A model generated the notes under the pieces. The model made no database searches. It saw only the letters and a list, made by a program, of their open reading frames with translations, and had not been told where the DNA came from. Shown here piece after piece: positions 42,305-59,100 of a stretch of DNA of 64,000 nucleotides (the stretch's first letter is position 1; each line of letters starts with the position of its first letter). The position numbers were made by a program, and so were the translations under genes. Source of the stretch: Setoptus koraiensis (Eukaryota; Animalia; Arthropoda). Location of the stretch: positions 2,418,001-2,482,000 of the forward strand of contig CM106586.1 in assembly GCA_048013815.1 (NCBI GenBank), given 5' to 3'.

Positions 42305-45300
42305 TTTTGTATACATTATTTCATGCGCATACACCACCGGCTAAATATATCCTAATTATAAGCTCCCATTTTCCGTATTTTTGTCTTGTCGTTTGCGTGC
42401 GCCCGTCCGACTAACTGCGTGATCAATGACGACCATACAATAAGTATAAGGTGGCTGTACAGGTTGCAATTAGTCACGATCATGACACCACGCAAACAGT
42501 GCCGCTACATTCGGACAATTTTCAAGTGTGTGCAAGTGTGTGAATTTGGCTGGCTGTTTTACATTCAACAACTAGTGTTATGTTTCAAACCAAACAAACA
42601 CACACATAATAAAAACACACACTAAACACTTGCGAGAATTGTGTTAAAAGCTCGTGCATAAGCGGGCCACTTTTGCCACCAGCCAGCCAGCCCAACAAAT
42701 ATGATAATGAAATTCGGCGTCTTGCCAGCAGCAGGCCGAGAGATGTATCAAGTTTCAAGCTGCAAGTTTTAAGCCGCCGACTCTTTTGTTGGCTGTTACC
42801 CGGCAGCTATCAACAGCCAAGCAACGGGTTAGCTGGCGCCGTCAGCTGATAAAGATAAGCCTCTTGTTGTTGGCGCTAAGCTTGTGCCTGCGCCGAGAAG
42901 AAGCCCCCTAAAGAGAATAATGGAGTTACGGATAGAGCGGTGGTATGTAATTATCGTCTAATCGTATCATCAGCATCCATGGCAACCGGCGCTGCAGTCG
43001 TCGTCGTCGTCTTCGTATAGTCGTAAAGTGGCAACTAAAGTCATAAATAAAGAGCCTGTAATTGACAAGACAACTACCCTTCTTCTTCGTGTTCTTTTTC
43101 TTTGTCATTCCTTGCCTGCTGTCAATTCGCTATGTTGTTGTTTTGCTTGTTTCTCTTGTCACCTCGATATGCATTTGTTTGCCATTTTGCAGGCAGGCAC
43201 GCAGGCTGACTGGCTGACTGGCTGGCTGGCTGGCGTGTCATTGCTCACAACCGCATTAGCTCTGTCATTATCCGTCTCTGCTGCCTATCTGTTGTTAATT
43301 ATCATTGTGTGTTTCTGATAATAACTCATGCTAATATTCACAGGTGGATGTGTGCGTGTCATCGCACACAGGTGAACATGAACAATAATAACAGAAACAA
43401 TGGCAATGAGATGCTAGCACCATACTAATACCATTGTCTGACAATGGCCACTTCCAGCAGCAACCATAAAGGAGCGCAGCCCAATTTGAATAATGCGCAC
43501 AGATATGCTCTGGAGTGAAAAATTTGGTCGAGTTTCGCATCATCGTCGCGACAATTGTACACTTTTGTCAGCCCATTATCGTTCGCCCGCCAAACTTTGC
43601 CTTTGGCGCCATTCTATACGAGCGAACTAGCCAGACTCTGGTTACCAGAGCGAGCTCGCTAATCTGATGGTGAGACAACGGAAACGACAAAAACGCGCGC
43701 GCGAGAAATATGATCGCTTCGCTCGATGATTGTCGAACTCATGCCGATGATGATTTAATGACTTGATGGCATACACACGCACTCAAACACATATAAACAA
43801 ACAACAACTAACAAACAATATAAATAATAGAGATAATACAATTGTGGTTTGCGCAAATCAACACCATTAATCATCCTGCTCGATCAGTGTGTGCTATACT
43901 GTCGCTGACAATCACAGAGCGCACCATCAACGTCAAAGTTGGTTAGCTATGATTTGATAAAATTAATTGGCTAGAGAAAGACATTAAACTGTTGGCTGGG
44001 AAGAGCGTTCAAACTGGATAGAGAAGCGTCGTATTGGCAACACACATCCAGCCATTGAGTTGTGGCACAACAATAAGCGGAACAAAGAAGCCACACGATA
44101 AACAAGAATGTATTATAAGAATGTATTATCTGGATAGGCAAACATTACTATTACCATTATTATTATCAGTATCAAAGCTTTGTTTGCATTGTCAGTTATC
44201 AATCATATTACGACGATCATCTTTGGGGAGCCGACGAGCAGCAATTATCGGTTTGCATTATAATCATTAATGTTGTTGCTACTGCTGCCGCCGCCACGAG
44301 ACCAGCAGAGTCGCTTGGTCGCACAAATTGAGAGCTTGAATATTAATTTCAATTGACTGCCAGTGATAACAACATAACGGTGTTTTGTCGGTCATTAGAC
44401 CACAATTTGATTGATTGACTCTCTGTTGGCTCATAGGTAGCTCATCATATGCTATCTGAGAACCGATGAAAGCGAGCCAGTTCTTCTTGTATCATTCGCC
44501 TTCTTGTATCTACCAATCATCGGCCAACCAAACAGCCAATCAAAATGTCTTAAAACTGCTGCTAATCTACACTGTAATGTATCAGTTATATTGATAAATA
44601 ATCAGCGAATAATCACTGCCAAACGATTATGATCGGTCGTAAAATATTTGATAGTAAAAAAAAAATAATCAGTTTTACACTGAACAGTAGGCAAAACAGT
44701 TTGATAAGAACAAAACAACAAAGATCCCCTTAGCGGTGCTCACAATAAAGATTGTAACTGCTAACAGTTGTAACTAAGCGTGAAACTTTTATAATTCAAG
44801 CTGCCAGACTAGATACGGAAGATACTACGAACAAACAAAAATCTGTTAGTTACTCTATCTAATATGCAATAATATGCAGCTCAGCAAATTTTACACACTT
44901 GAGAATTAACATTGTAAATGTTGCTCAGCCAGATATTATGAGTGCTCGCGTGTTAAAGCAGCCACTTCGTAACAATAGCAACGTAATTATTTATACATTT
45001 CAATTACAATTTGCCAGCCAACACTCACAACTCGGACGAGTTAGCTCGCGAAGCTGATAAACTAGAATAATTTAAGCAAATGTAGCTGCTTGTCATTAGC
45101 ATAATCATCACAAGTTTAGTCACGAGCATAATTAGAGCGCCACAAAATTTACACGTACCAGTACCACGCTGTCACTAATACGATTCTAATTTATGATAGA
45201 TTGTTGTCGTTTATCTTTATTTATTACACGCTAGCCGTTCAATGGCTGGACAGTCTCGATTGTCGTTGTCTCATCTTTGCACGAGACTTTATTTTGACAG

Positions 45301-46271
45301 GCCCCGTTCAAGAGCGAAACACTGACAACAAGAAAGATTAATCTTGACGGTGGCCTTAACGGTGGTAGCGGTTGATTTGCCTAATTGTGTTTAATTTAAG
45401 TTACTAGTTAATTAGTCTGGTCAACTAATAATAGTCGAGCGAGGTCATTAAACATATATTAGCAATGAAAATTCTCATCGGCAAAACGCAACCCAGTGCG
45501 CTTGTAAAAAGTCACCATTCAGTATTGGTTCATTTTCGAGATTTTACAATTGGTTGGACAGGTTTATTTCAGGTGGACGACTCCTTTCAATAGCGCTAAA
45601 AACAGAGATACCTGAATAGGAAACTTGGCTCGCTCCACAAGACAGCTCGTTGATGATACTGAAATATGATTATTGTAGTATTTTTTCGAAAAGCACGTTC
45701 GTCTGAGGTTGTAAGCAGACCATGAGCATGGAAATATTGTTACCTTGGCATTGTTAAACTCCAACTAACGCGCAGTGTATGTAACAATTACGATGACCAT
45801 TGTCCACTTTTTTGACCTTTGCTTGACTTTGAGATGATGATGGTTCTAGATGAAAATTTGCAACTTCTCTAAGTATCTACAATTCATGCCGATATCGTCA
45901 CTAAGATGATACCGTCAGTGGTTATCTATTCTGATCAAGTCAGAATAGATGTCAGATGTGTTACGAGGGCCCGGAGAAGAGATTGATGCCAATTATAGCT
46001 GTCAGGTGTTTTGGTATGGACATTTGGTGTAGCCTATAATTAGGACTTACGCAAACCATTTGTATATTAGCTTCTTACGAGCAAGCATTGAGACCCTGTC
46101 TCGATTTCTCAGCAGAAGCGAGACAGAAAAGGTTGATATTTTAGTTTAACGGCACATCTCTCTGGTTGAACGTGTGTGTCAACTCTAGATTATTGAAGCA
46201 AACAAAGCAAGTGAATCTAGCAACCCTAAAGAGCCATCGTATTATCTCGTTATTATTTTCAATTGGTGGTC

Positions 46272-47168
46272 TCATGCAGATTTTTTATTCGTATTTGATC
46301 GGGGTTTTCTTTTTTGATTTGATTTTTGCTTAATGTGCATCAGCCCCTTCAGTCCAACCAATTTTCTAGGTTTGTGTTTTGCCACCTTCTTGCTTGGTTC
46401 TTGACCATTACTGGAAAGCTTGGTCTCATCCACAACATTGGTGACTCTAAGAGCACGATTTCTAAATCTGTGCTGGTCCAATTGCAGCGCCTTGTTCACT
46501 GTGGCTCGGTCTTTGAAACAAACAAATCCAAAGCCCTTGCCTAAGCCAGTGGTTTGATCACGGACAATACGAACACCGTCAATGGGGCCACATTTTTCGA
46601 AGTATGTATAAACTTCGTCATCCTTGGCATCAAATGGCAAATTGCCTATGAAGACGGACTTTTTTCTGCTCACTTTCACCTTATGTTTCTGTGATTTTGG
46701 CTTAGAGGCCCTATCCACTCTTATATGGTGTTCGTCAACTAATAGTCCATTTTTGGCTAGTGCATTTTTCATCGGAACATCATCTGGATTTGATTTGAAG
46801 ACGACATAGGCATTAAATGAGTCTATCCTACCGTGTATCTGTTTAGTTATTGATGCCACCCTCTTTGAAAGTTTCTTCTTGTCGGGCGCAACAGACCTTA
46901 TTCTCACTGACTCTATATCACCACAATCTCTGAAAAGTTTTCTTATAGTTCTAGTGGTCATTGTCTTTGGCAAATTGCCCACAAAAACAGTCCTGTTATT
47001 CTTTTCAACGTTGAACTTTGGTGGGCGCTTCAACTTTGTCGGGTTGCTGCGGGCTTCTCCAGTATCCTCATTGTCATCATCATCTTCATCCATGTTGTCC
47101 TCCTCTTCCTCTTCAAAATTGTCGCCCTCATCTTCCTCATAATCTGATGCAATTTTATTCCTAGTCAT
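46272..47168 (-). CDS. RBM34: RNA-binding protein 34 / Nop12 (two RRMs), intronless
   Basis: Acidic N-terminus; RRM1 RTVFVGNLP...GDIESVRIRS...NAYVVF...HHIRVD; RRM2 SVFIGNLPF...VRIVRDQTTGLGKGFGFVCF; Lys-rich tail. Confidence 0.9.
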   Translation of the reverse strand: MTRNKIASDYEEDEGDNFEEEEEDNMDEDDDDNEDTGEARSNPTKLKRPPKFNVEKNNRTVFVGNLPKTMTTRTIRKLFRDCGDIESVRIRSVAPDKKKLSKRVASITKQIHGRIDSFNAYVVFKSNPDDVPMKNALAKNGLLVDEHHIRVDRASKPKSQKHKVKVSRKKSVFIGNLPFDAKDDEVYTYFEKCGPIDGVRIVRDQTTGLGKGFGFVCFKDRATVNKALQLDQHRFRNRALRVTNVVDETKLSSNGQEPSKKVAKHKPRKLVGLKGLMHIKQKSNQKRKPRSNTNKKSA

Positions 47169-47810
47169 TCTGATACAATGATATGATATAATATTAGATG
47201 ATAAGAGATGATATAAGCCGTTTTTCGATCAGTTTCGAGCAGTTTAGCTTTGCTGCATGGGGTGATTAATTATGGAAAAAAAAAACACGTTTTTGTGTTA
47301 TTGTCAATAGTGAAGCAGGTGCTTCGGGCGCGCGATTCAAATGCAATAATGTTACGTAATGAGTAACAAAAGACTTCACCAATAGTTTATACAGTTAGTT
47401 TAGAACGCCATTGTTTCATTATTATTAGATTCATTTTGCAACATCGATTGTTGGTGTTGGTAAGTTACATTCATTGATGGATTAGAACGGGATCCAATTC
47501 TCATTGGTTGACTTGTTGTGTTGCTCTGAATAAAATTAGGTGAAAAGGATGTATACTGAATGTTGTATTTATTTTTTGTTTGTTGGAAATGGACCTGTCG
47601 GTGCCTGATTCTGAGATGCCTGATATCTAGATATTGGCAGTCGCTGTCGCGACCTATGCTGATGTGTAGGGCACATTTCTAACAGGTTGATGAATTTGCC
47701 TCACTGGCCCAGCGGCATTATTAGTAGCGTAACCGATGGCCGCACCAAAAAATCAACCAATCAACCAACCAGAAACGAAAGATGGAGCGGGTAAACGATT
47801 ATCCAGGTCC

Positions 47811-48526
47811 GACTCAACTCGTCGAGATCTACAAGAGTAGACCCACCTGAAAATCTGAGAGTTAAAGTCACCTAGCTTACCTTGTGAGATAGGACTGGTA
47901 TTTTATATTAATACCTAAGTATTGTGTCGGAACCAGCTCAACTCGCCACAACCGCCCTTATCGATTCAAACTCTTTTCTCCTTTCTCGGAAACTGATCCA
48001 AATACGCAAACTGAAAGACTCTTTGACATCGGGAGCGGGTTGTTCGCCCACTACGCGACGAAATGATCTTCTACAAAATTTCGTTAGAAGCGAAAGTTTG
48101 CTCCACAACATTATGTCGATTTCTATAATCTCTAAATTGAAACTAAATGCAAACAAATCAACCGTTTCTTTCACTAACAAGCTAATCTAGGTGAACAAGA
48201 CTCGAAGATTTTTTTTATGTGTCTATTTTTGTAGATTTCGACGAGCTGAGTCAAACTCGAACAACCATTTGAACCTGATTTGTTATTAGTTTTTGCAATA
48301 TTAAGGTTGATTCACTGGTTATTCTACTAAATACAAGATCAAGACTGTTATGTACAGGAGACCAGCTTGCTTTGGAGCCTTGACAGGTCGATGTGTCTGC
48401 TAAAGAATGCTTTTAGGCACAAAATCCAGAAGAGACCAGGATATTTCAAAAAGACAAAGTTGTTCGGGTCGACTCAGTTCGTCGAGATGTATAGAGATCG
48501 ACCCATTAGAAAATATCTGAGAGTTA
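47811..48526. repeat. Three diverged copies of one motif: 47811..47864 (+), 48221..48265 (-), 48459..48526 (+); possible MITE or TIR remnant
   Basis: 47811..47842 and 48221..48252 are inverted repeats matching at 28 of 32 positions. The third copy is a direct repeat of the first (gactca..cgtcgagat..gaccca..atctgagagtta). No target-site duplication found. Confidence 0.7.
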
Positions 48527-48804
48527 TGTTCTCTTAGGTTATATTTTAAAAGGGATAGCTCACTTCATAGGCTCTCTAGTTTCATTGGCAAATAGCACCA
48601 TAGAAAAAGAGCGAGTTGAAGCGGATGAGGTTTAGGTAATTTAATCCATTCTATCATCATCACAGTCGATGAATTGTAACTTTTGTTGTGCCGTAGTGTT
48701 AGAGTAATTTTAATCATGATGACGAAAATGATTGATTAGTTACTATGCATGCCTGTGCGTGTTTGTTACTCTTCTATGACAATTGTTATTGGTTCTTGTC
48801 GATG

Positions 48805-49942
48805 CTAGAAGAAATTGCTAACTTGCAAAATCGGCATAATATAAAATTTGGACTTTGGAGGCGACTCTGGGAAGCGTTCCAATTTTTTGCAATTCTCTAG
48901 CACTTTTGGCGACTCTAAATCTGGACAAAATGAGCCAGAGGCGTCGCCCATATTTGAGTCGACATATTGTGTCATAACATCGGTGTGCTCGACGCATTCA
49001 GGTTTGAGGGCCTCGAGAAATTCCTAGTACAATGGATTAGTGTAACGTTATAAGAAGGGTAATGATGGTATATTGAGTGGGATGGAAGAGAATTGTTAAT
49101 AGTTAGCCTTTTGAAATAATCAACAGTGCACTAAAGTCAGTCGATGTAATTGCCGGTAGTCGAGCTCACCTTCCTTATGGCCGCTATTGCACAACAGGCG
49201 TGTTGAACCTGCTGATCTCCTGTGATATTTTTAAACGTTTCTCCATTGGTCAGAATGGCCTCTGCCGACATTATTGCCTTTCTTTCTGCCTGTTTCAAAG
49301 AGTTCACTCGGTGTTTGTATAGACACTTTGAGGCACTCAAGATAGCCTTACTGAGGCCGTCGTCTGATGGTGACGATGAGCACACTTGCTTAACGAATTT
49401 CGCTCTAGTACCTAGAACAGCCGAGGCAACAACTTTTTGTACTTTTGTCAAGCATCTAATATACAAACGGAAACATTTAATGGCATCCTGATTTCTCTTG
49501 CATGACGCCTGTAGACTTGCCTGGTCTTTGGGCCAGGCAAAGTCACTGAGTAAAAAGCTATAGCCTTGAGAGACGCTGCATTCCTCCAAGACCTCCAAAT
49601 GTCGACTACAGTTAACCGGGCTAGTGATGATGGTATTCAGATTGAATGTTGACTTTGCTGGCGATGTGCTTGAGGCCCTAGTTCTAGTTGCAAAGCTGGT
49701 TGATATGGCCGTTGCAGCGAGACAGGCTAGAACTACTCATAAAGCAAGGTTTACATAAAAACAAAAAAAGAGAGGCATTTGCTAAATTGTGAATGATTTT
49801 TATGAAAAAAAAAACTGGCTCAAGTTGGTTAGTCGATATGAGATCTCCTATGGAGGGGCTTTTCGATTAAATTTTCTACTCAATCGGTGCTTATTTTTCA
49901 AAACTCACCCAGACAGACATAGTTAGAAAATATTGTTGTCAT
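48805..49942 (-). CDS. Secreted 12-cysteine protein, paralog A; exons 49942..49909, 49732..49170, 49023..48805
   Basis: GT-AG introns join MTTIFSNYVCL|VLACLAATAIS (signal peptide)...HACCAIAAIRK|EFLEALKPECVEH...FYIMPILQVSNFF in frame. Cys spacing matches paralog B. Confidence 0.8.
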
Positions 49943-50620
49943 GATGATGTGATTTTGTTTTCTGTCGGCTGATTGCTGTGACTTGAATGTTGCTCGGTCT
50001 ATGTAAGTTGAACAAGTCGTGATATTCAACCGACTATATTAATTCAGCCAAAGATTTTCACCGATTGCCGCTTGATTTGTTTTTTAGTTTTTTTGCCAGT
50101 GTTGTTGAATTCGTTGCTGTACCTGTTGTTGTTGTACCTGTTGTTGATGAGGTTGTCGACGAGTAATTAGCGGTGATTGGCGCAGTTGATCTGTAGTGGG
50201 GTGACACCACCAATGCGACGACTGTATTTGCTTGATTATGTACAAAAAATAATTTCACTTGAAAAACGGCAACCTATCAACACGACATAATCTTGATATA
50301 TCTATAAATATTTATTTTTGAGCACTGAAATTGTCGTATTTGTAAGTGTTTGAGCGAGAGTGTCTTTCATATGAGTTATTGATCTGTCTTTTCTTCATTC
50401 CCTTCGTCGTTTCGCGTCAACTGATCGTCATCACCGGGAGCGGTTGTGGTGGCAACGGCACCACTACTACCATCAAGCTACCATAGATGGGAGACATTTG
50501 GCTGGCTAGTTTACTATTGATGAACGAGGAAAGGGCAAGTAGTCTAGTCTCTAGACTGTTGCTAATAATGAGTAGTTCCTGTATAGTATTCTAACCTTGA
50601 AAAGAGAGACAGAGAAACAG

Positions 50621-50623
<3 letters not shown>

Positions 50624-50654
<31 letters not shown>
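50624..50654. repeat. (GA)n microsatellite
   Basis: Read directly. Confidence 0.9.
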
Positions 50655-50657
<3 letters not shown>

Positions 50658-51959
50658 AGACTTAATTGCCATCGGAGTAGTTGCCTACGATATAATGAAA
50701 GTGCCTGACATCATCACGCCAGTAACTATCTGACTTTTTGTTATTGATTACACAAATCATGACAAGATCATCCCAAAATAATCATCTGTAATCTGCTATC
50801 TCTGGGCAAATAACCAAGCAACAACTTTGCATCTTATTACCAACGCAGGCACTCGCTTTAGTTGTTAAATAAATATCTATATTTAAATATATATGTATCA
50901 CAATCAAGTTAATGTCCGCCATCGATGGTCCTAATGGCACGTTTAGCATTTGGCCACAGTTGTTTTCGTTGTTTTTGGACACTAACAAACTATAAGTATC
51001 AATTATTTTATGCTAATTTTTCCCCACACTAAAATCTCTTTCTTGCAGCTTTGCCGTCGGATGAGGAGGATACATCGCTCGCATCATCCTGTCATCTTGA
51101 TAACTTTATATAAAGCGACATAGAGCCATGTCCAACAATTATTTTCATGGTTATGTGCACAGGTATATTACTCACTGCCTATTATCATGGATATTAATAG
51201 GCATCATATTGGTATGATATCTTCTTATAGCGAGGCTGTCTCTCAATAAGTAAAAGTGTTGAGTCAGTCAAAATCTTCGACTGGTGACCTTTGACTATGG
51301 ATTTATGATGTAATCTATGGAGAGAGCCATAGGCAGCTATCGAATCATTCAGCATAAAAAATAGCAATCTGCGAAAAGCTCAATTTTGGGCAAGCATATA
51401 AATGTGATAATAATACTTCCAACATGCCGTTGGTTTCCGTCGACTGTCTAGCTAACAACTCACAACTTGTTGAGACGACAACACAGAATATGCGAGCTAT
51501 ACCTGACGGAGGGGACTAGCCCCTCTGAAAGGCTTGCTATGCACTGACGTAACACAAAAAAAGGTCGTTTCGATATAGCAAAAAGTCAGTTGGTAGTTAT
51601 TGGGTACTAGAGATTGCGAAGTGCAGGTATATTTTCTCATAAGCTTCGAGTATATTCGCTTTAAAACATTAAATCGCTTGTTAAGCTTGAGATGATACAT
51701 GAAAATTTGGCGGGTTAATTGGTTTTCCATAATTAAATATGTAGTATTTAACTAATTATAATTGAAGCTTGATCATCAGCTTACCGCTACAACACAAATG
51801 AATAAGATGTGCGAGGCACCCAAGCCTAAAGTAATCAGTTTGTCGCAGTAGTTGAATAGTAAAATTGTGCTTTTGTTATGAATGTATGACATAGTTGAAA
51901 AGTTCTTCAGAAATTGATAGATTCTAGTCTGTTGTCGTTCGATCCCGTGAACCCCTCTT

Positions 51960-53130
51960 CTATGCCTTCAGTAAATCGATGACTTGTAATATTGGACGCA
52001 CAAGGTACTTGGCCTTCAATTGTTTGGGTGAATCCAATTTGGGTAAATTGTCACAGTCTTTTGTGCTTGTTGATTCAAAATTTGGACAAATGAGGCCAAC
52101 GGTTTCGGCGAGATAAGAGTCAACCAGATCTCCAAGTGTTTGAGTGTGCTGAGCGCAAGCAGGCAGAGTGGCTTCCATAAACTCCTGTTACATTAATTAT
52201 TATAGTGATTGGTGATAAATCATGCGTCAGTTGTTGTAAGTGTCATTGGATTATTGAATTGTTGTGTAAGTATCAAAAGACAATGACGCTTGAAAGTAGT
52301 CGAATCAATTAATTACCTTTTTCACTTGGGCCACCGAACAACACGAATATTTCAACCTGTGGTCAAAACTCAACTTTGAGCTTGCTTGTACAATGGACTC
52401 CGAGAAGCGTATGGAATTCTCCTCAGCCTTCACTCCTTTCTCAGCAGAGAGGCCAGACTGAATAGGAAATAATGTGAGGACGAGAGCAACCGGTGGGTAT
52501 TTGTAAATGCTACTAGTATGAGTTGAGATGATCAGAATGTGATGAGAGCTGAATTAGGCCCTTCCTTCTCACCTTTTGCATGCATCTGTTAAGTTCTAAG
52601 AAGCGTTTGCTAACATCCGATGGTTTTTCGGCGCACAATTTCTTGTTGTATTTACTTCTATTGGTGATCATAGAGATAAGTATTCTTTCAGTCAACGGCG
52701 CCAAACATTTGGCGTAGATCTTCAAGCATCTGAAGCCGTCTGCTTGTCTTTTGCAGTCCTTCAGTAAGGCTTCGTGACTAGTCGGATAAAGGGCTTCTTG
52801 AAATCTAAATGAGAATCCCTGCATCAGGCCACACTCGTCGATAATATCAACTTTGTCCATAGTACAATTTGCTCTACCACTAGTTATGGTTTTAGTCAAA
52901 TTGAAAGTGGGACTGAGGCCCAAGCGTGACTGTGTCGCTCTGGATTCAGAGAGCACTGAATTGAAAAGAGAAACAGATCTTATGATTATTACATTTTCAA
53001 ATATTGTACCAGTTATCGAAAATGAATTGAATATTATTCTAGTTAAATTATTTATATCAGAACTGTTCTTACCTAGAATTGACATGAGACTTAATAGAGT
53101 CAACATTGTAAATTGTGATTGGCGAAACAT
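51960..53130 (-). CDS. Secreted 12-cysteine protein, paralog B; exons 53130..52573, 52457..52317, 52184..51960
   Basis: Phase-0 GT-AG introns join ...LNRCMQK|SGLSAEK...YSCCSVAQVKK|EFMEATLPAC...YLVRPILQVIDLLKA. The last intron is at the same position as in paralog A. Confidence 0.8.
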
Positions 53131-54416
53131 TTTGTGTTTGGTCGTCTTTGTCGCTGTTTGACGCTTCGGAATTTGTGAAGAAATGAAAGTGACTGTTGTT
53201 AGTGCTGCTTTGTAAGTAAGTCGTTAAGTGAACTGAATTAAATAGATCTCTAGATAGCTCCTGTAACTGTGCTCGGTTGAAAAGATTGAAGTAATTGAAT
53301 GACTTCTTGATTGGCCGATTCTATTTATATACTAGCAACAACGAGCATAACTTGTTTGAACAACAACAACAACAACAAATTGCACTTGTTTCGGCTGTCC
53401 CACTCTTGTCTCACCTCTCACCTCTTGGGTTCAGAGTATTTTTTCCTCCCCATCGCAGAGTCGTAATCACATGGGACAACACATCACATGCGACAAGATA
53501 CCGTCTAACATAAACCAAGATCAAGGGGGAGAGTGAACGAGTATCATCTCATGATTAGTATAAGACTTACTAGACGATGAAAAGGACCGCCCAGTTAATT
53601 AATTGTTTGTTTGGATTGGAAGTGATGATGTTTGTTTGCTGTCGCTATGTTAGACAACTATAACTCATGTCTGTTTGTTTCTATATGCGTGCGTGATCTT
53701 CCGTCTCTGAAGGAGATTATCGCCAGTGAATGACGGAGAAGTGGGAAAAAAATTAATAAAGATGTCGCTCATTCGACATGATCTCTCCCCCACGACAGGT
53801 TGATTGTCATAAACACAGTTGCTGACATTTGCCAGTATCGATAATCACCAACAATGCTTTCGCCTAGCCAACCTTACGAGCTTTGCACATGCAAATAAAA
53901 GACAAAATGTTTGGGCTGTCATGTAGTCACAACAATAATAAAGCTTGACTATATTAGCTTGTTAATATCATTAAAACGTTGATGCAGCTGTTGTAGACAT
54001 ACGGCGTTTGGACGTTTTCCATCTATAGATTCATGAAGAAATTTCTTGAATATAAATAAGCAGTAATTATCGAATCAATAACAACAGGTCAACAAACAAT
54101 TAACTAACTAACCATTGAACGTGACTGTCTCTTTCCCTCATTGTGTACACAAATGGTAACTAGAAAGCAAATAATAAGCAACTGTTATATTATGCACGCA
54201 ATCATTTGAGCTACACATGTATTGATTTGATCAGCCTATAGACTATTCCATAGCCAGATTGTCCATAGAGAATGTCCTTGATGTATCATTGATTGTCTAT
54301 TATACCGTGTGAACTGCTGACTAGCTGCGAGAGCTTATCGCAACCACACTCACGTATGAGATTCAAAATCAAATTTAGATCTCTAGAATGTCTACATAAT
54401 TTCATTTTGTTATTTT

Positions 54417-55090
54417 TTAAACCCTCTTGATAGAGTATGTCGCTTGAGGACATGAGCGACCAATGAAGATCAAAAACTTTCTCAGGTGTTCTCCCTCATT
54501 TCTTAGCATGCATTGCAACAATTGTGAAAGCCAGTTAGTGACAGGCACAAATCCGTGATATTCCCCGACAGTTTTAGCTAACTGGGAACGTTCATCGTCG
54601 AAAGATAACAACCAAAGCCAAGTTAACTAGGAACTTGCGCGATTTTGGTCCAGTCTGATGTCGGCAGGCTCCAGATCCGCCATGAATCAGATTTGAATTG
54701 TTAACATCTATGTTTGTCTCTTGTATAGAGCGTCCCTAAATGTGTTCGAACATCAAAGCTGCTCGTTGACACAGATTGTGGTTTTTACCAAGATAGCGCA
54801 ATAATACTGGACGAATCTGTATAGGAGGCTGACATAGAGACACTGCCTCCATAAATGTACCGGTAGCACTAGGATGACATTCAATCTGTTTAACATGACT
54901 TCCGCTGCACAAAAATGGTACTATTTCTCTGCCGAGAAGAGTCGTCTGCGAATCGTTCAATACTTTCCAGATCTTTGGAAACATCTGTATCCAAATATCA
55001 TGAGCCAATTGTGAGTCAGTGACATGTCTGAGCCTTAGATTGGAGTAGACTACCAGTGTTGATCTGTTTCACATCGTCGTCAACGCATTG
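54417..55090 (-). pseudogene. TRRAP: Decayed TRRAP/Tra1 (Nipped-A) fragment: two non-adjacent segments fused
   Basis: TGSLLQSKAQTCH /frameshift near 55020/ DSQLAHDIWIQMFPKIWKVL...PFLCSGSH...IRPVLLRYLGKNHNL...FEHI* (TAG 54738..54736), then ACRHQTGPKSRKFL /frameshift near 54620/ LWLLSFDD...LLQCMLRNEG...CPQA. Both blocks match TRRAP as I recall it, where they lie several hundred residues apart. Confidence 0.85.
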
Positions 55091-55373
55091 TCGTATATTG
55101 TAGAGCTCATTAGAGACAATTAGCCAGTTATCATTTTGCATCAATTCCAATCACAATTAACATGAGATAAAATAAAATAATTCTAGAACCATTCAAATCA
55201 GCGCGCCGAAATTGCACACGCGCAATTTCTTGCGCATTGTACAATGAAATTGCATGTCAGTTCATTTCATCATCCTATCGGATTCTTTTTCATTATAATA
55301 AAAAATAAATAAGTGATTTGCTTGTATTAATTTATTTATCTGTACTATTTGTATTAATTATATAACCAACACA

Positions 55374-55667
55374 ATGGCATCTATGGGCGGAGATGACGCT
55401 AAAGCAGAGCCATCGGGTGACACACCTTCAAGTGACTATATTAAATTGAAAGTTGTCAGCCAGGACGGAACCGAGATACATTTCAGGGTAAAATATGGTA
55501 CTGAGATGAAAAAAATCAAAAAGAGCTACTCAGATAGAGTTGGTGTACCCATACAATCATTGAGATTTTTATTCGATGGAAAACGAATTGATGACACAGA
55601 CACACCAAAGCTTCTCGAAATGGAAAACGAGGACACCATAGAAGTATTCCAGGAACAGCAAGGAGGT
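55374..55667 (+). other. SUMO: SUMO moiety (SUMO1/smo-1-like) ending in di-glycine GGA GGT
   Basis: Ubiquitin-like fold motifs and QEQQGG terminus; disordered acidic N-terminal arm. Confidence 0.95.
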
Positions 55668-56042
55668 ACCGCTTCATCATCATTTCACCGGCTAAGATTC
55701 CTGATGAAATTAAATCACGAGACTGTTACGATCGAATTGAAGAACGGTTGTATTATAACTGGAACCATTATCGGTGTAGATATCGCCATGAACACACATT
55801 TGAAAACTGTCAAAATGATTCCATCTAGAGGTGCCGCTCCCATACAATTGGACGGGCTTTCTATTAGAGGAAACAATATAAGATATTATATTCTACCAGA
55901 GGCTTTGGCTCTTGGACCTCTGCTCGTCGATGAAACCCCCAAACCAAAACCAAAAAATCGTGAAACAGTGAGAGGGGCTACTCGCGGCAGAGCGCGTGGA
56001 GGCCGTTTAGGAGGAAGAGGCCGAGGTGGTCAGAAGCCTTAA
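55374..56042 (+). CDS. SUMO-SmD1: SUMO-SmD1 in-frame fusion protein (222 aa)
   Basis: Single ORF: aa 1-98 SUMO ([19 protein letters not shown]...[11 protein letters not shown]...EVFQEQQGG), linker TASSS, then SmD1 ([22 protein letters not shown]...MNTHLK...[14 protein letters not shown]...RG-rich tail). No stop codon, intron or SmD1 initiator Met between them. Confidence 0.92.
55683..56042 (+). other. SNRPD1: SmD1 moiety (snRNP core protein D1)
   Basis: Sm1 motif [18 protein letters not shown]...[14 protein letters not shown], Sm2 motif [15 protein letters not shown]-terminal [16 protein letters not shown]. Confidence 0.95.
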
Positions 56043-56101
56043 ACCTGGCAAATTATTGTAATAACAAAAATAATATGTGTGCATATGATGATACAAAAAC
56101 T

Positions 56102-59100
56102 TCAAGGCAACGCTACGTTGACTGTCTTCTTCGAAGGGGCCTGTTGTACACTATTCGAATCATAATGTTGGTACACTGCATGCTGTTGCTGGTTAATATG
56201 ATTAGAACCATTCTTAAATTGCTGTCGTTGCTGATGTTGTTGTTGGTTAGCAATCAAGTGTCGCAAATTACTCTGGCCTCGCTGGACACCTCCACCATTG
56301 TTGAGTTTATGTTGACCATTTGGGCGTCCATTAGAAGCGTTTGCATGACAATTTGGAGGTACACCAACGATCAAATGATACGTTCCTAAGGTTGAACAAT
56401 CGCTGTTTGTATAATCACTGGATGAATCATCTACAGAGGACATCTTTTCATGAAATTGAGATCTCTGTCTCAAAAGGACAAATACCGCTGAGCAAACAGC
56501 TAGGGTTAACAAAATCAATGATACAGTTATTCCAAAAAGGAATCTTGTTGTTGTAAAACATATTGTAGAGCTGTAGTCTTTGTATATCTGTTGAACATTT
56601 GGTGAAGGTTGTTCTCGATGATATGCAGCATGCTTGATTGATCTGTTTAGGCTTGTCTCGTTATTATACGATCCATTAACAACAGACTCATACAATGCGG
56701 CCAAGGTGTCATTGGGGTTCGCTATCAGACTAAATGCAACATCACCTATGATAGAGATATTGAAAAAGGAGTGAAAAATCAATATCAAGCTATAGTTTGT
56801 CATGCGTCAAAAAAGAACAAGAATTAGTTAGCTTGCTCCGATGATAGTTACCTGGACTGACTACTTGAATTGTTTTCATGGTTCTAACATTAGTAGATTC
56901 ATTGATATAGTCCGAGCCACTCTGACGTCGTTTTCTTTCTGACCTTTTGTTTTCATTCGGTGTTTTCGTTTTAGAGGTCGCAATGCTCTCATCAGATCTC
57001 ATAGATCTAGGCATGGCTTTAGCCATAATCAGATTCTTTTTATTATCGGATGCGACGCCTACATTATCGAATTCTCCTTGCCTGCTTGTGTAGGTATTGT
57101 GAGAGGAAATCAAATTTGCCTGGTGCTGTTGAGGTAACATTGGGATATTGTTTTTTAGCATGGTAGAATAAGGAGATCCAGTGTGTAGGCTTGGGGTGTT
57201 TGACACAACTTGGTGTTGTTGACGTGAATTCGGTGGCTGTATATTCGCATATAGCAATTGCGGTTTTGAATATTGTTTTGACACTTGGTGTATTGGACTG
57301 GTGGCTTGGCTATTATGCAACAAATGTGGCGGTAGAGCGCCTCCAGATGAGGCAGGTGAGCTTCCGGCGACCATTGATGTATCTAGCTTGACCTGAGCTC
57401 TACCTTGATTCTCATCCATTTTGATGGTGGTCTGTATTCCTGATGAGGCTTGTTCACTCAAAACTGGTCCAGTGCTGATGGCCATACCGTGGTGATGATG
57501 ATAGGATTGACCTGTCATAGAAGAAGGTAAAGGCTCCTTATGGGACACAATTTCTGTACCCGATGCGACGTAATCGCCGGCCCCTTGGCCCGCACCTCCC
57601 GCGATAGCCGTAGCTGAGCCAACACTTTCTGGTGAGCAAGCAGGCTCAGGACATTCGTGACGGCATACTTGAATTACACATTGGAAATGGACATTCATAG
57701 AATCCGGAAATTTGAATGCTTGGAAATAGGCATAGGACACCACTGTAGCTTGTGGTCCAAAGTTGCGGACTTTCAGGAATTTGGCCATGATCTTTGGTCG
57801 AGCCACGCAACCATACTCATCAACCAGTTGGATAGGCTGGTGTTTGTTATTTCCATCATGTGCTACACAGTTTCTGACCAACATATCAAATTTGTTTTCA
57901 TCGTCTTTAATAGCTAATACCATCGTCATAGTCTGACCTATCTTGACTATTCCGGCGACTTCCGATTGCCATGGACCTGTTTTTAGTTTTTTAGCATTAT
58001 AAAAGGATCTTGGTAAATATACTGAATTTCCCATGATTTAATCAATTCAATTTGTTCACCAGAGGCTTACCTTTCCCCACTTGGATCTGCATCCAGCATT
58101 GAATATTGTCGCCAAGGAAATTAGCTGTTACAGCATCCAACATTTCCACATTGTAAGGCCTAAAAGTTACTGATTTCTCATAGTAATCATACCAAGTGCA
58201 ACGTAGCTTTCTTGCTTGATCCCAGATTTCCTGCACTTGAGGATCATACTGAATAATAATTGTATTCTCAATATATAAACCATTGGGTTGTCCCTGATTG
58301 GCTGCACCTACTCCCGTCAATTGATTATTAACACCGTTTGGATAAGTATTACCGGATGCATCACTACTAGTCATTCCACATTGACCCAGATGGATGTCGA
58401 AATTGACCGAAGTTTGACCACTATTTGGCGGTAAATGAACGCATTTTGTGTCACCTGATTGAGAGATAAAAAGAACATACAATGATGAATTTGAATCTAT
58501 TGTACATATGCTAGTTTGGTTGATGGATCATCATTTCTATCTCATCGTGTCACAATCTCATGAAAATCTTTAATTAGGCGCGTACTCGCCCTCGCACCTT
58601 CTTGCTAATGAGGAGTCGATCCAATGACAAAGGTCATCGCAATGACTGTTTGAGTTGGCCTAGTTTTATGAGAAGACAGCGACGTCGACTGTGGACGTTG
58701 TTTTGTTGTTTCAAATCATATCTTTGACCAACTTCACAATCGTAACATTTTTGAGGTATGCGAGAGATATCACGAAAATTGAGATGAAAAGTAGGTTAAG
58801 CAAATAAACTACTTGTTAGCAGATTAGATGAATGAATCTATCTTAGCCTTGCATCCATCTATATCAATTTCATTTAAGTGTTTCCTATGATCTTGAGAAA
58901 GGTTTATACAACATTTGTGAATGTCTACAACGTCATCCTTTCAAGAACTATGTCAGCAGTTGCTCCATGACGATATCAGTCGCTGTTCTGTCACGAATGT
59001 CACCGATTCCAGTTTATATATAATAGACAAATATCCATGCCTATATTATATATACTGTTTACATGAATCCACCGTTCCATTTGAATTGTCTGCTTCATTG

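Follow-up and report, generated by a model that had tools for sequence, protein, structure and literature searches.

An in-frame SUMO-SmD1 fusion in a mite genome, apparently maintained by selection

Structure of the fused reading frame

The stretch of DNA analysed here (the window) comprises 64,000 nucleotides (nt) from Setoptus koraiensis (GenBank assembly GCA_048013815.1, contig CM106586.1, positions 2,418,001 to 2,482,000 of the forward strand), and all positions given below refer to it unless a contig is named. On its plus strand, a single open reading frame (ORF) runs from an ATG to a TAA at 55374..56042, codes for 222 amino acids (aa) and contains no internal stop codon. It consists of a complete SUMO, a spacer of nine residues and an SmD1 that is without its first four residues and without a start codon. 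The SUMO moiety (M1-G98; 55374..55667, +) ends in EQQGG, with the Gly-Gly (GG) codons gga ggt at 55662..55667. The spacer TASSSFHRL, together with the first two bases of an Arg codon (55668..55696, +), lies between this GG and SmD1. It is followed by the equivalent of SmD1 exon 2 (55697..56042, +), which codes for the complete Sm fold and an RG-rich tail ending in RGRGGQKP before the stop codon, and which has neither an initiator Met nor MKLV.

Domain searches with Pfam on the 222-aa protein placed Rad60-SLD/SUMO at aa 23-91 (E 2.8e-18) and LSM at aa 108-173 (E 1.5e-15). Among PDB sequences, aa 15-101 matched human SUMO2 (SUMO1 was also matched in the same region), and aa 107-220 matched residues 4-117 of human SmD1 (1b34_A; E 8.4e-40), the RG-rich tail included. 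The C-terminal motif of the SUMO moiety reads EQQGG|T at aa 94-99, with Thr and no Pro at the position after the cut (P1'). In the SmD1 half, FHRL occupies the position of MKLV, and the sole Met near the SmD1 start is the one within RFLMKL. Both Sm1 and Sm2 motifs are present, IRGNNIRY is conserved, the frame is intact over 116 codons, and the Arg-Gly-rich C-terminal tail aligns with the RG tails of relatives. The initiator Met of SmD1 and the N-terminus encoded by its exon 1 (MKLV-RFLMKL) were not found in the window copy. An earlier interpretation made from the letters alone (the sequence-only reading) had described a stop-free ORF with complete SUMO, GG at 55662..55667, Thr at P1', FHRL in place of MKLV and the Met of RFLMKL; every checkable detail of this description was accurate.

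The continuous frame alone is weak evidence, since an in-frame and stop-free spacer of 27 nt would arise by accident with a chance of roughly 0.2 once the two sequences are adjacent. Stronger points are the SUMO without a stop codon and the selectively maintained SmD1 without a start codon or exon 1. With tblastn, no further SUMO or SmD1 copy was found in the window.

Presence of the junction in independent DNA

31-mers were sampled from 55100..56300, and a share of 0.57-0.99 of them was found in nine public runs, which carry three organism labels and belong to five studies. Run X1 contains 0.99 of the sampled words. Logan contigs of X2, a DNA run under another organism label than the run with the highest share, were aligned to the window. 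Here, a unitig of 3497 nt covers 55654..56700 with 0 differences; it takes in the last SUMO codons, the spacer and SmD1 and reaches into the adjoining gene. A second unitig of 317 nt covers 55367..55683. The junction is thus spanned by independent DNA, which answers the concern about misassembly that accompanied the sequence-only reading. That the fused ORF exists in the DNA is close to certain.

Comparison with separate SmD1 genes

The closest SmD1 was P0121 on metagenome contig L004 (89% aa identity). The L004 gene consists of two exons, i.e. exon 1 (ATGAAGTTGGTTAG|GT), an intron of 127 nt and then cag|ATTCCTGATG. At the nucleotide level, its exon 1 reads ACAATGAAGTTGGTTAG|GTGAGT (ATG AAG TTG GTT AG|GTGAGT), and exon 2 runs from ...cttcag|A TTC CTG ATG AAA. 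DNA homology between the window and L004 starts exactly at the exon-2 acceptor of the latter (L004 1118 corresponds to window 55695). At this old boundary the window reads ctaAG|A TTC CTG ATG AAA, and its AG at 55695..55696 has the position of the L004 intron-1 acceptor. The window therefore has exon 2 only and is unable to start SmD1 alone.

More distant mites carry a stand-alone, intronless SmD1 that starts with MGVLCRFLMKL (L002, 6001..6411; L003, 6001..6384) and is flanked by Rft1/mS26 and BLOS1-like genes in conserved synteny. In this group, the MGVLC N-terminus is conserved as protein despite synonymous changes. As both MKLV and MGVLC are found before RFLMKL in mites, FHRL is plausible at this place.

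Just past the fusion stop, the 12-mer TTATTGTAATAA (56053..56064, +) matches TTATTGTAATTA, which lies right after the SmD1 stop of L004. This match is of marginal significance, as one of equal length came up in 4 of 300 shuffles and in 19 of 400 controls taken from real sequence. The 12-mer is possibly 3' untranslated region (3'UTR) or poly(A)-signal sequence that was carried along with SmD1 exon 2.

The SUMO half, its spacer and a second SUMO context

The closest SUMO was P0019 (contig L001; 85% identity), and the nearest named SUMOs were those of the acariform mites Fragariocoptes, Dermatophagoides, Halotydeus and Medioppia (63-74% identity). Mite SUMOs share EQ(Q/S/T)GG. Their precursor tails after GG are highly variable, with 1 to 50+ residues and one GG|T case. 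In L001, an unrelated tail comes after SUMO, and beyond it lies the end of a convergent gene resembling the ZP/cuticlin-type gene of the window; its partial protein (GAYHLIFGIAPG...) aligns to aa 139-194 of the window gene. Since a ZP/cuticlin-like gene end lies downstream of SUMO in both L001 and the window, SUMO was probably the original occupant of the locus. The L001 tail was also inspected for an SmD1 relic (L001:385..408, NNNRYYI compared with NNIRYYI of Sm2). With 24 of 2000 shuffles reaching it, this candidate, read in the SUMO frame, was too weak to be kept; it could be a remnant of an earlier SUMO-SmD1 association, or the N-rich sequence could have produced it by chance.

Depth in X2 is 178 on the SUMO unitig (55367..55683) and ~97 on the adjacent ones, and the graph forks at either end of the SUMO unitig. 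Past 55683, one branch is the window sequence into SmD1 and the other continues with CCCACCTCGGACTAGGCACAAACAAAGCTC, read as GG-TASSSSHLGLGTNKA... This second context shares sequence with the window through 55683, and its next letters (CCCACCTCGGACTAGG) can still be aligned by eye with TTCACCGGCTAAG. On the upstream side, it skips or replaces 55224..55366, with a joint 55223->55367 in an X2 contig and a loose end before 55186. Further patches of extra depth from the second context were located on parts of the upstream gene, at 55186..55223 and at 56215..56275 (ZP gene), and none on the SmD1 part. The second context is probably a second ordinary SUMO gene or an allele; judged by depth and by how far the diverged flanks extend, a paralogue is favoured over an allele.

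Because TASSS is common to this SmD1-less context, at least the first five spacer residues are SUMO's own tail and not SmD1 intron. A derivation of the spacer from the end of the old SmD1 intron had been considered, as L004 reads TSSSSCF in the same frame. It was set aside in view of GGTASSS in the SmD1-less context, and the pyrimidine-rich likeness is probably due to chance.

Six differences between the window and X2 are clustered at 55406..55446, i.e. in the N-terminal region of SUMO. Five of these are also present in X10, and the flanking unitigs agree without a difference over 1465 nt. Taken with the 317-nt unitig common to two contexts, the clustered sites suggest gene conversion between SUMO copies, and the cluster looks like a conversion tract between the two.

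Selection on both halves

For SmD1 exon 2 compared with L004, nonsynonymous (dN) and synonymous (dS) divergence were 0.086 and 1.46, respectively (omega about 0.06, and about 0.04 over the Sm fold). For SUMO compared with L001, dN was 0.041 and dS was 2.2 (omega about 0.02). Both halves are under strong purifying selection. As dN/dS is low and synonymous sites are nearly saturated, neutral evolution can account for no more than a few percent of the branch. Seven differences between the window and L004 fall into the Sm fold and, judged by eye against outgroups, appear to split about evenly between the lineages, so no acceleration is seen in the window copy.

In X2, no second SmD1-like contig with at least 90% likeness over 55684..56053 was found and depth was flat at 97.5, where filtering may have removed some contigs. 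As a near-identical SmD1 contig was not seen there, the SmD1 half is probably not a fresh duplicate of a parent gene. From its pattern of substitution, the SmD1 moiety thus appears to be functional, or to have been so until very recently. For lack of a start codon of its own, it could be expressed only within the SUMO frame or by way of splicing that has escaped recognition.

Searches for other fusions

No SUMO+LSM protein was found among the matches of length-matched searches in 5.8 billion clusters, nor among the best matches listed from 1.84 billion cluster representatives, which were searched with no length filter. Ten matches in two or three stretches from the cluster representatives were checked with Pfam, and all were poly-SUMO. 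None of 80 metagenome loci contained a SUMO+SmD1 fusion; one metagenome match spanning residues 63-194 (L010) was tried as a fused orthologue and turned out to be an ordinary MKLVRFLMKL SmD1. The exact 222-aa fusion protein is not on record. The literature search returned work on SUMO and small nuclear ribonucleoprotein (snRNP)/SMN biology, and no natural SUMO-Sm or SUMO-cargo fusion was found in it. The remark of the sequence-only reading that it knew of no described SUMO-Sm fusion agrees with the protein collections searched and the literature found. It had also asked whether related mites share the fusion; the nearest relatives (L001, L004, L002 and L003) carry separate SUMO or SmD1 genes. 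By this comparison the fusion is lineage-specific. The SUMO-SmD1 fused ORF is real and selectively maintained, and it is apparently unique.

Proposed expression and processing

The following origin and expression of the gene are proposed. A SUMO gene would have lost its stop codon, and SmD1 exon 2 with its 3'UTR would have come to follow SUMO's own short post-GG tail in frame, with the original start exon of SmD1 gone or vestigial. Most likely, the gene would be transcribed from the SUMO promoter as one mRNA. Translation would give a 222-aa precursor, from which Ulp/SENP would release conjugatable SUMO and free SmD1 by a cut after Gly98. The freed SmD1 would carry five extra N-terminal residues and FHRL for MKLV, and would enter the Sm ring normally. 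SmD1 would thereby be the C-terminal propeptide of a SUMO precursor. The fusion probably had a neutral origin in a genome prone to deletion and gene fusions, and would be tolerated as the SUMO-maturing protease re-separates the two proteins. With the loss of SmD1's own promoter, start codon and first exon, the locus illustrates how an extremely streamlined genome can rewire the expression of an essential gene.

All SUMO precursors are matured by Ulp/SENP proteases. What these enzymes recognise is the SUMO domain in its folded state, and the cut falls after GG (PMC9603560). Eukaryotic cells typically cleave ubiquitin-like (UBL) fusions with their own proteases, and yeast cleaved SUMO fusions in vivo (PMC4414272), for which reason cleavage after GG may reasonably be expected here. 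We infer that a single mRNA is made, that it is translated as a fusion, that this is cut at GG and that the released SmD1 works, and the full chain, from one mRNA and one protein through GG cleavage to functional SmD1, is given a probability of about 0.5. The further claim that the mite has no other SmD1, and that its only one is made as a C-terminal propeptide behind SUMO and freed by the SUMO-maturing protease, is tentative and must be regarded as somewhat doubtful.

Several observations weigh against this chain. Two raw RNA-seq runs chosen by species label (X21 and X24) contained 0 reads at the locus, and the organism was absent from both; they are probably host runs. The sequence also turned up under other organism labels and in air metagenomes, which agrees with the source being an acariform mite, probably an eriophyoid. 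Eriophyoid mites, which have two chromosomes and genomes of 34-47 Mb, are often sequenced as contaminant of their host plant (PMC11879100, PMC11920263). In X10, possibly an RNA run, a SUMO contig covers 55407..55628, and no contig lies over the junction or SmD1. The search for other SmD1 copies covered the 64-kb window only, and protein and metagenome searches did not find a fused orthologue in other species. The second context in X2 consists of an identical SUMO coding sequence that is followed by ...GGTASSSSHLGLGTNKA, i.e. ...GGTASSS-SHLGLGTNKA, and not by SmD1. Were it an allele and not a paralogue, a further SmD1 would have to be present at another place. With a second SUMO copy at hand, the fused gene is probably not the only source of SUMO, which weakens the coupling of SUMO supply to Sm-ring assembly put forward in the sequence-only reading. 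Finally, the old exon-2 acceptor AG and an exon-1-like ATG upstream of SUMO (see below) leave room for some splicing route to SmD1.

Alternative explanations

A chimeric join in the assembly, or an engineered SUMO-tag construct present as a contaminant, would account for the GGTACC (KpnI site) directly after GG at the junction, and the X2 de Bruijn graph has a branch point at 55683, 16 nt past GG. As GGTACC is also found in the second, SmD1-less SUMO context, the site is native. The SUMO half is of mite type and has native flanks on both sides, the X2 unitig passes independently through the junction into the ZP gene with 0 differences, and the stretch was found in nine runs under three labels. 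A vector or KpnI artefact was ruled out on these grounds, and misassembly and construct contamination are very unlikely, to the point of being almost negligible. Next, the precursor might stay uncleaved, and SmD1 in the Sm ring would then bear an N-terminal SUMO domain permanently. In favour of this, SmD1 with a bulky N-terminal tag such as GFP is tolerated in snRNP assembly. A natural uncleaved ubiquitin-eS31 is known from Giardia and is attributed to an altered GG motif (both as cited in PMC8122580), unlike the intact GG of the window. Given the canonical QQGG|T junction, the flexible Ser-rich spacer, the lack of Pro at P1' and the general cleavage of SUMO fusions by endogenous proteases (PMC4414272), there is only a slight chance that the fusion persists. 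A larger, still minor share falls to a redundant passenger, in which case a normal SmD1 would lie elsewhere and the exon-2 copy, belonging to a young chimeric gene or being one of two old copies, would be a discarded SUMO propeptide with little or no contribution to snRNPs. This would agree with the fact that SUMO tails are discarded and highly variable, with the SmD1-less SUMO context in X2 and with the confinement of the copy search to the window. It is opposed by dN/dS values of 0.04-0.06 at a dS of about 1.4, which limit the neutral share of the branch to a few percent at most, by an ORF intact over 116 codons with Sm1/Sm2 motifs and RG tail, and by the near-identical parent copy not being seen in X2, which makes a recent duplication unlikely. 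On balance, a redundant SmD1 half is considered unlikely and retains some weight.

The remaining alternative concerns a look-alike of SmD1 exon 1, ACAATGAAATTG (ATG AAA TTG = MKL; 55241..55252, +), which is located 130 nt 5' of the SUMO ATG. It matches ACAATGAAGTTG of L004 over 12 bases and contains the sole ATGAARYTN in 45000..55700 (+), i.e. in 10.7 kb of upstream plus strand; a match of equal length came up in 2 of 300 shuffles and in 13 of 400 controls taken from real sequence. The element sits inside 55224..55366, the segment skipped or replaced in the second SUMO context of X2. The resemblance is suggestive, and the element is possibly a vestige of SmD1 exon 1. If SmD1 belonged to a nested or alternatively spliced gene, it would be made from its own mRNA by splicing of the upstream exon (ATGAAATTG at 55244) across SUMO, and the continuous frame would be incidental or one of two products. 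Such a route would be in line with the 12-mer and its donor-like CAT|GTCAGT, with the AG kept at the ancestral acceptor (55695..55696) after a moderately pyrimidine-rich stretch, and with in-frame acceptor-like sites in the last SUMO codons (ttccag|GAACAG at 55652|55653, and aacag|CAAGGA). CAT|GTCAGT, the one donor that is plausible, yields a 12-nt exon of phase 0, which does not fit the phase 2 required at the old acceptor. A joint between the upstream ATGAAATTG exon and that acceptor was ruled out by the resulting frame shift, which leads to a stop after about 50 codons. No GT or GC donor gives phase 2, and frame-keeping acceptors for the upstream exon are restricted to those within the last SUMO codons. 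Moreover, the 12-mer match is marginal in significance and positioned 5' of a TATA-like AT-rich stretch, and since SUMO has no stop codon, any unspliced mRNA still codes for the fusion. A nested gene is therefore distinctly unlikely. A mini-intron of 31 nt, G|GTACC...CTAAG|A (55666..55696), was rejected as well, being implausibly short; its removal would yield ...QQGDS and a stop, with GG destroyed. Expression of SmD1 as part of a cleaved SUMO precursor is preferred over these alternatives.

Neighbouring genes and upstream sequence

Downstream of the fusion, a convergent ZP/cuticlin-type gene is located at 56102..58482 (-), with a match to Pfam ZP-C (E 3.8e-12) and a faint trace of CUT_N; its ZP-C domain and the transmembrane and Q/H-rich tail exon that comes next lie within 56102..58034. 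Its stop lies 59 nt from the fusion stop, and with this gap between convergent stops the 3'UTRs must overlap. The upstream neighbour (54417..55150, -) matches the Tra1/TRRAP HEAT-ring profile at its extreme end only (positions 1624-1682 of 1682, E 3e-12). On its right, there is no space for the N-terminal ~2000 residues of Tra1/TRRAP. It may be an N-terminally cut-down TRRAP-like gene. Between this neighbour and SUMO, the otherwise AT-rich DNA contains a GC-rich, partly palindromic element (gcgcgccgaaattgcacacgcgcaatttcttgcgc; 55199..55240), part of which recurs in the second SUMO context of X2, where the stretch in common is 55186..55223 (+). By this recurrence, the element is a candidate for a shared promoter element.

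Comparison with known systems

Ubiquitin and FUBI are the textbook modifiers that are made fused to ribonucleoprotein (RNP) subunits. A natural SUMO-SmD1 precursor would extend this principle of UBL fusions to SUMO and the spliceosome. If the mite's only SmD1 is indeed produced behind SUMO and freed by the protease, this would be the first SUMO-cargo polyprotein of natural origin and the first case of a spliceosomal core protein with such a mode of synthesis. It would also show that, in a shrinking genome, gene fusions can safely settle behind any GG-cleaved modifier. If the SmD1 half is redundant, the locus would be a snapshot of the birth of a chimeric gene. Whether chance or necessity lies behind fusions of modifiers and RNP subunits is still debated (PMC8122580). 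The SUMO-SmD1 locus would add an independent and evolutionarily young case, in which the modifier may serve as cis-chaperone or expression enhancer of the cargo, or in which the fusion may simply be tolerated since the protease undoes it.

Ubiquitin-eL40 (UBA52) and ubiquitin-eS31 (RPS27A) resemble the window ORF in that an N-terminal modifier of the ubiquitin family ending in GG is joined with an unrelated small RNP subunit in one ORF. Both parts are released by the modifier's own protease, which is also the expected outcome for the window fusion. At ubiquitin loci, modifier copies are kept identical by gene conversion (PMC8122580), and the 317-nt SUMO unitig in two contexts is a likeness to this. 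The systems differ in modifier, cargo and joint: ubiquitin is followed by ribosomal cargo directly after GG, whereas in the window SUMO is followed by spliceosomal Sm cargo after a spacer of nine residues. Moreover, ubiquitin-eL40 and -eS31 are universal in eukaryotes, and SUMO-SmD1 was found in a single lineage.

In FUBI-eS30 (FAU), as in the window, a UBL other than ubiquitin is N-terminal to an RNP subunit. Cleavage of FUBI-eS30 is needed before the subunit works (PMC8354635). This fusion is conserved across holozoans and processed by USP36, whereas the window fusion would, by analogy with other SUMO precursors, use Ulp/SENP. A lineage-restricted capture of housekeeping genes behind a modifier is also represented by ubiquitin-actin and ubiquitin-ribosomal protein P1 of chlorarachniophytes (as cited in PMC8122580). 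These involve another modifier and other cargo and, in that account, have transcript evidence.

Engineered Smt3-X tags, which are cleaved by Ulp1, have the identical SUMO-GG-passenger architecture and are cut efficiently, including in eukaryotic hosts (PMC4414272). They are laboratory constructs, whereas the SUMO-SmD1 ORF is a native locus with native synteny. Ordinary SUMO precursors belong to the same family, share the QQGG end and have their tail removed by SENP/Ulp. Their tail is a short unconserved peptide, whereas that of the fusion is a complete, selectively maintained protein of 124 residues with known function.

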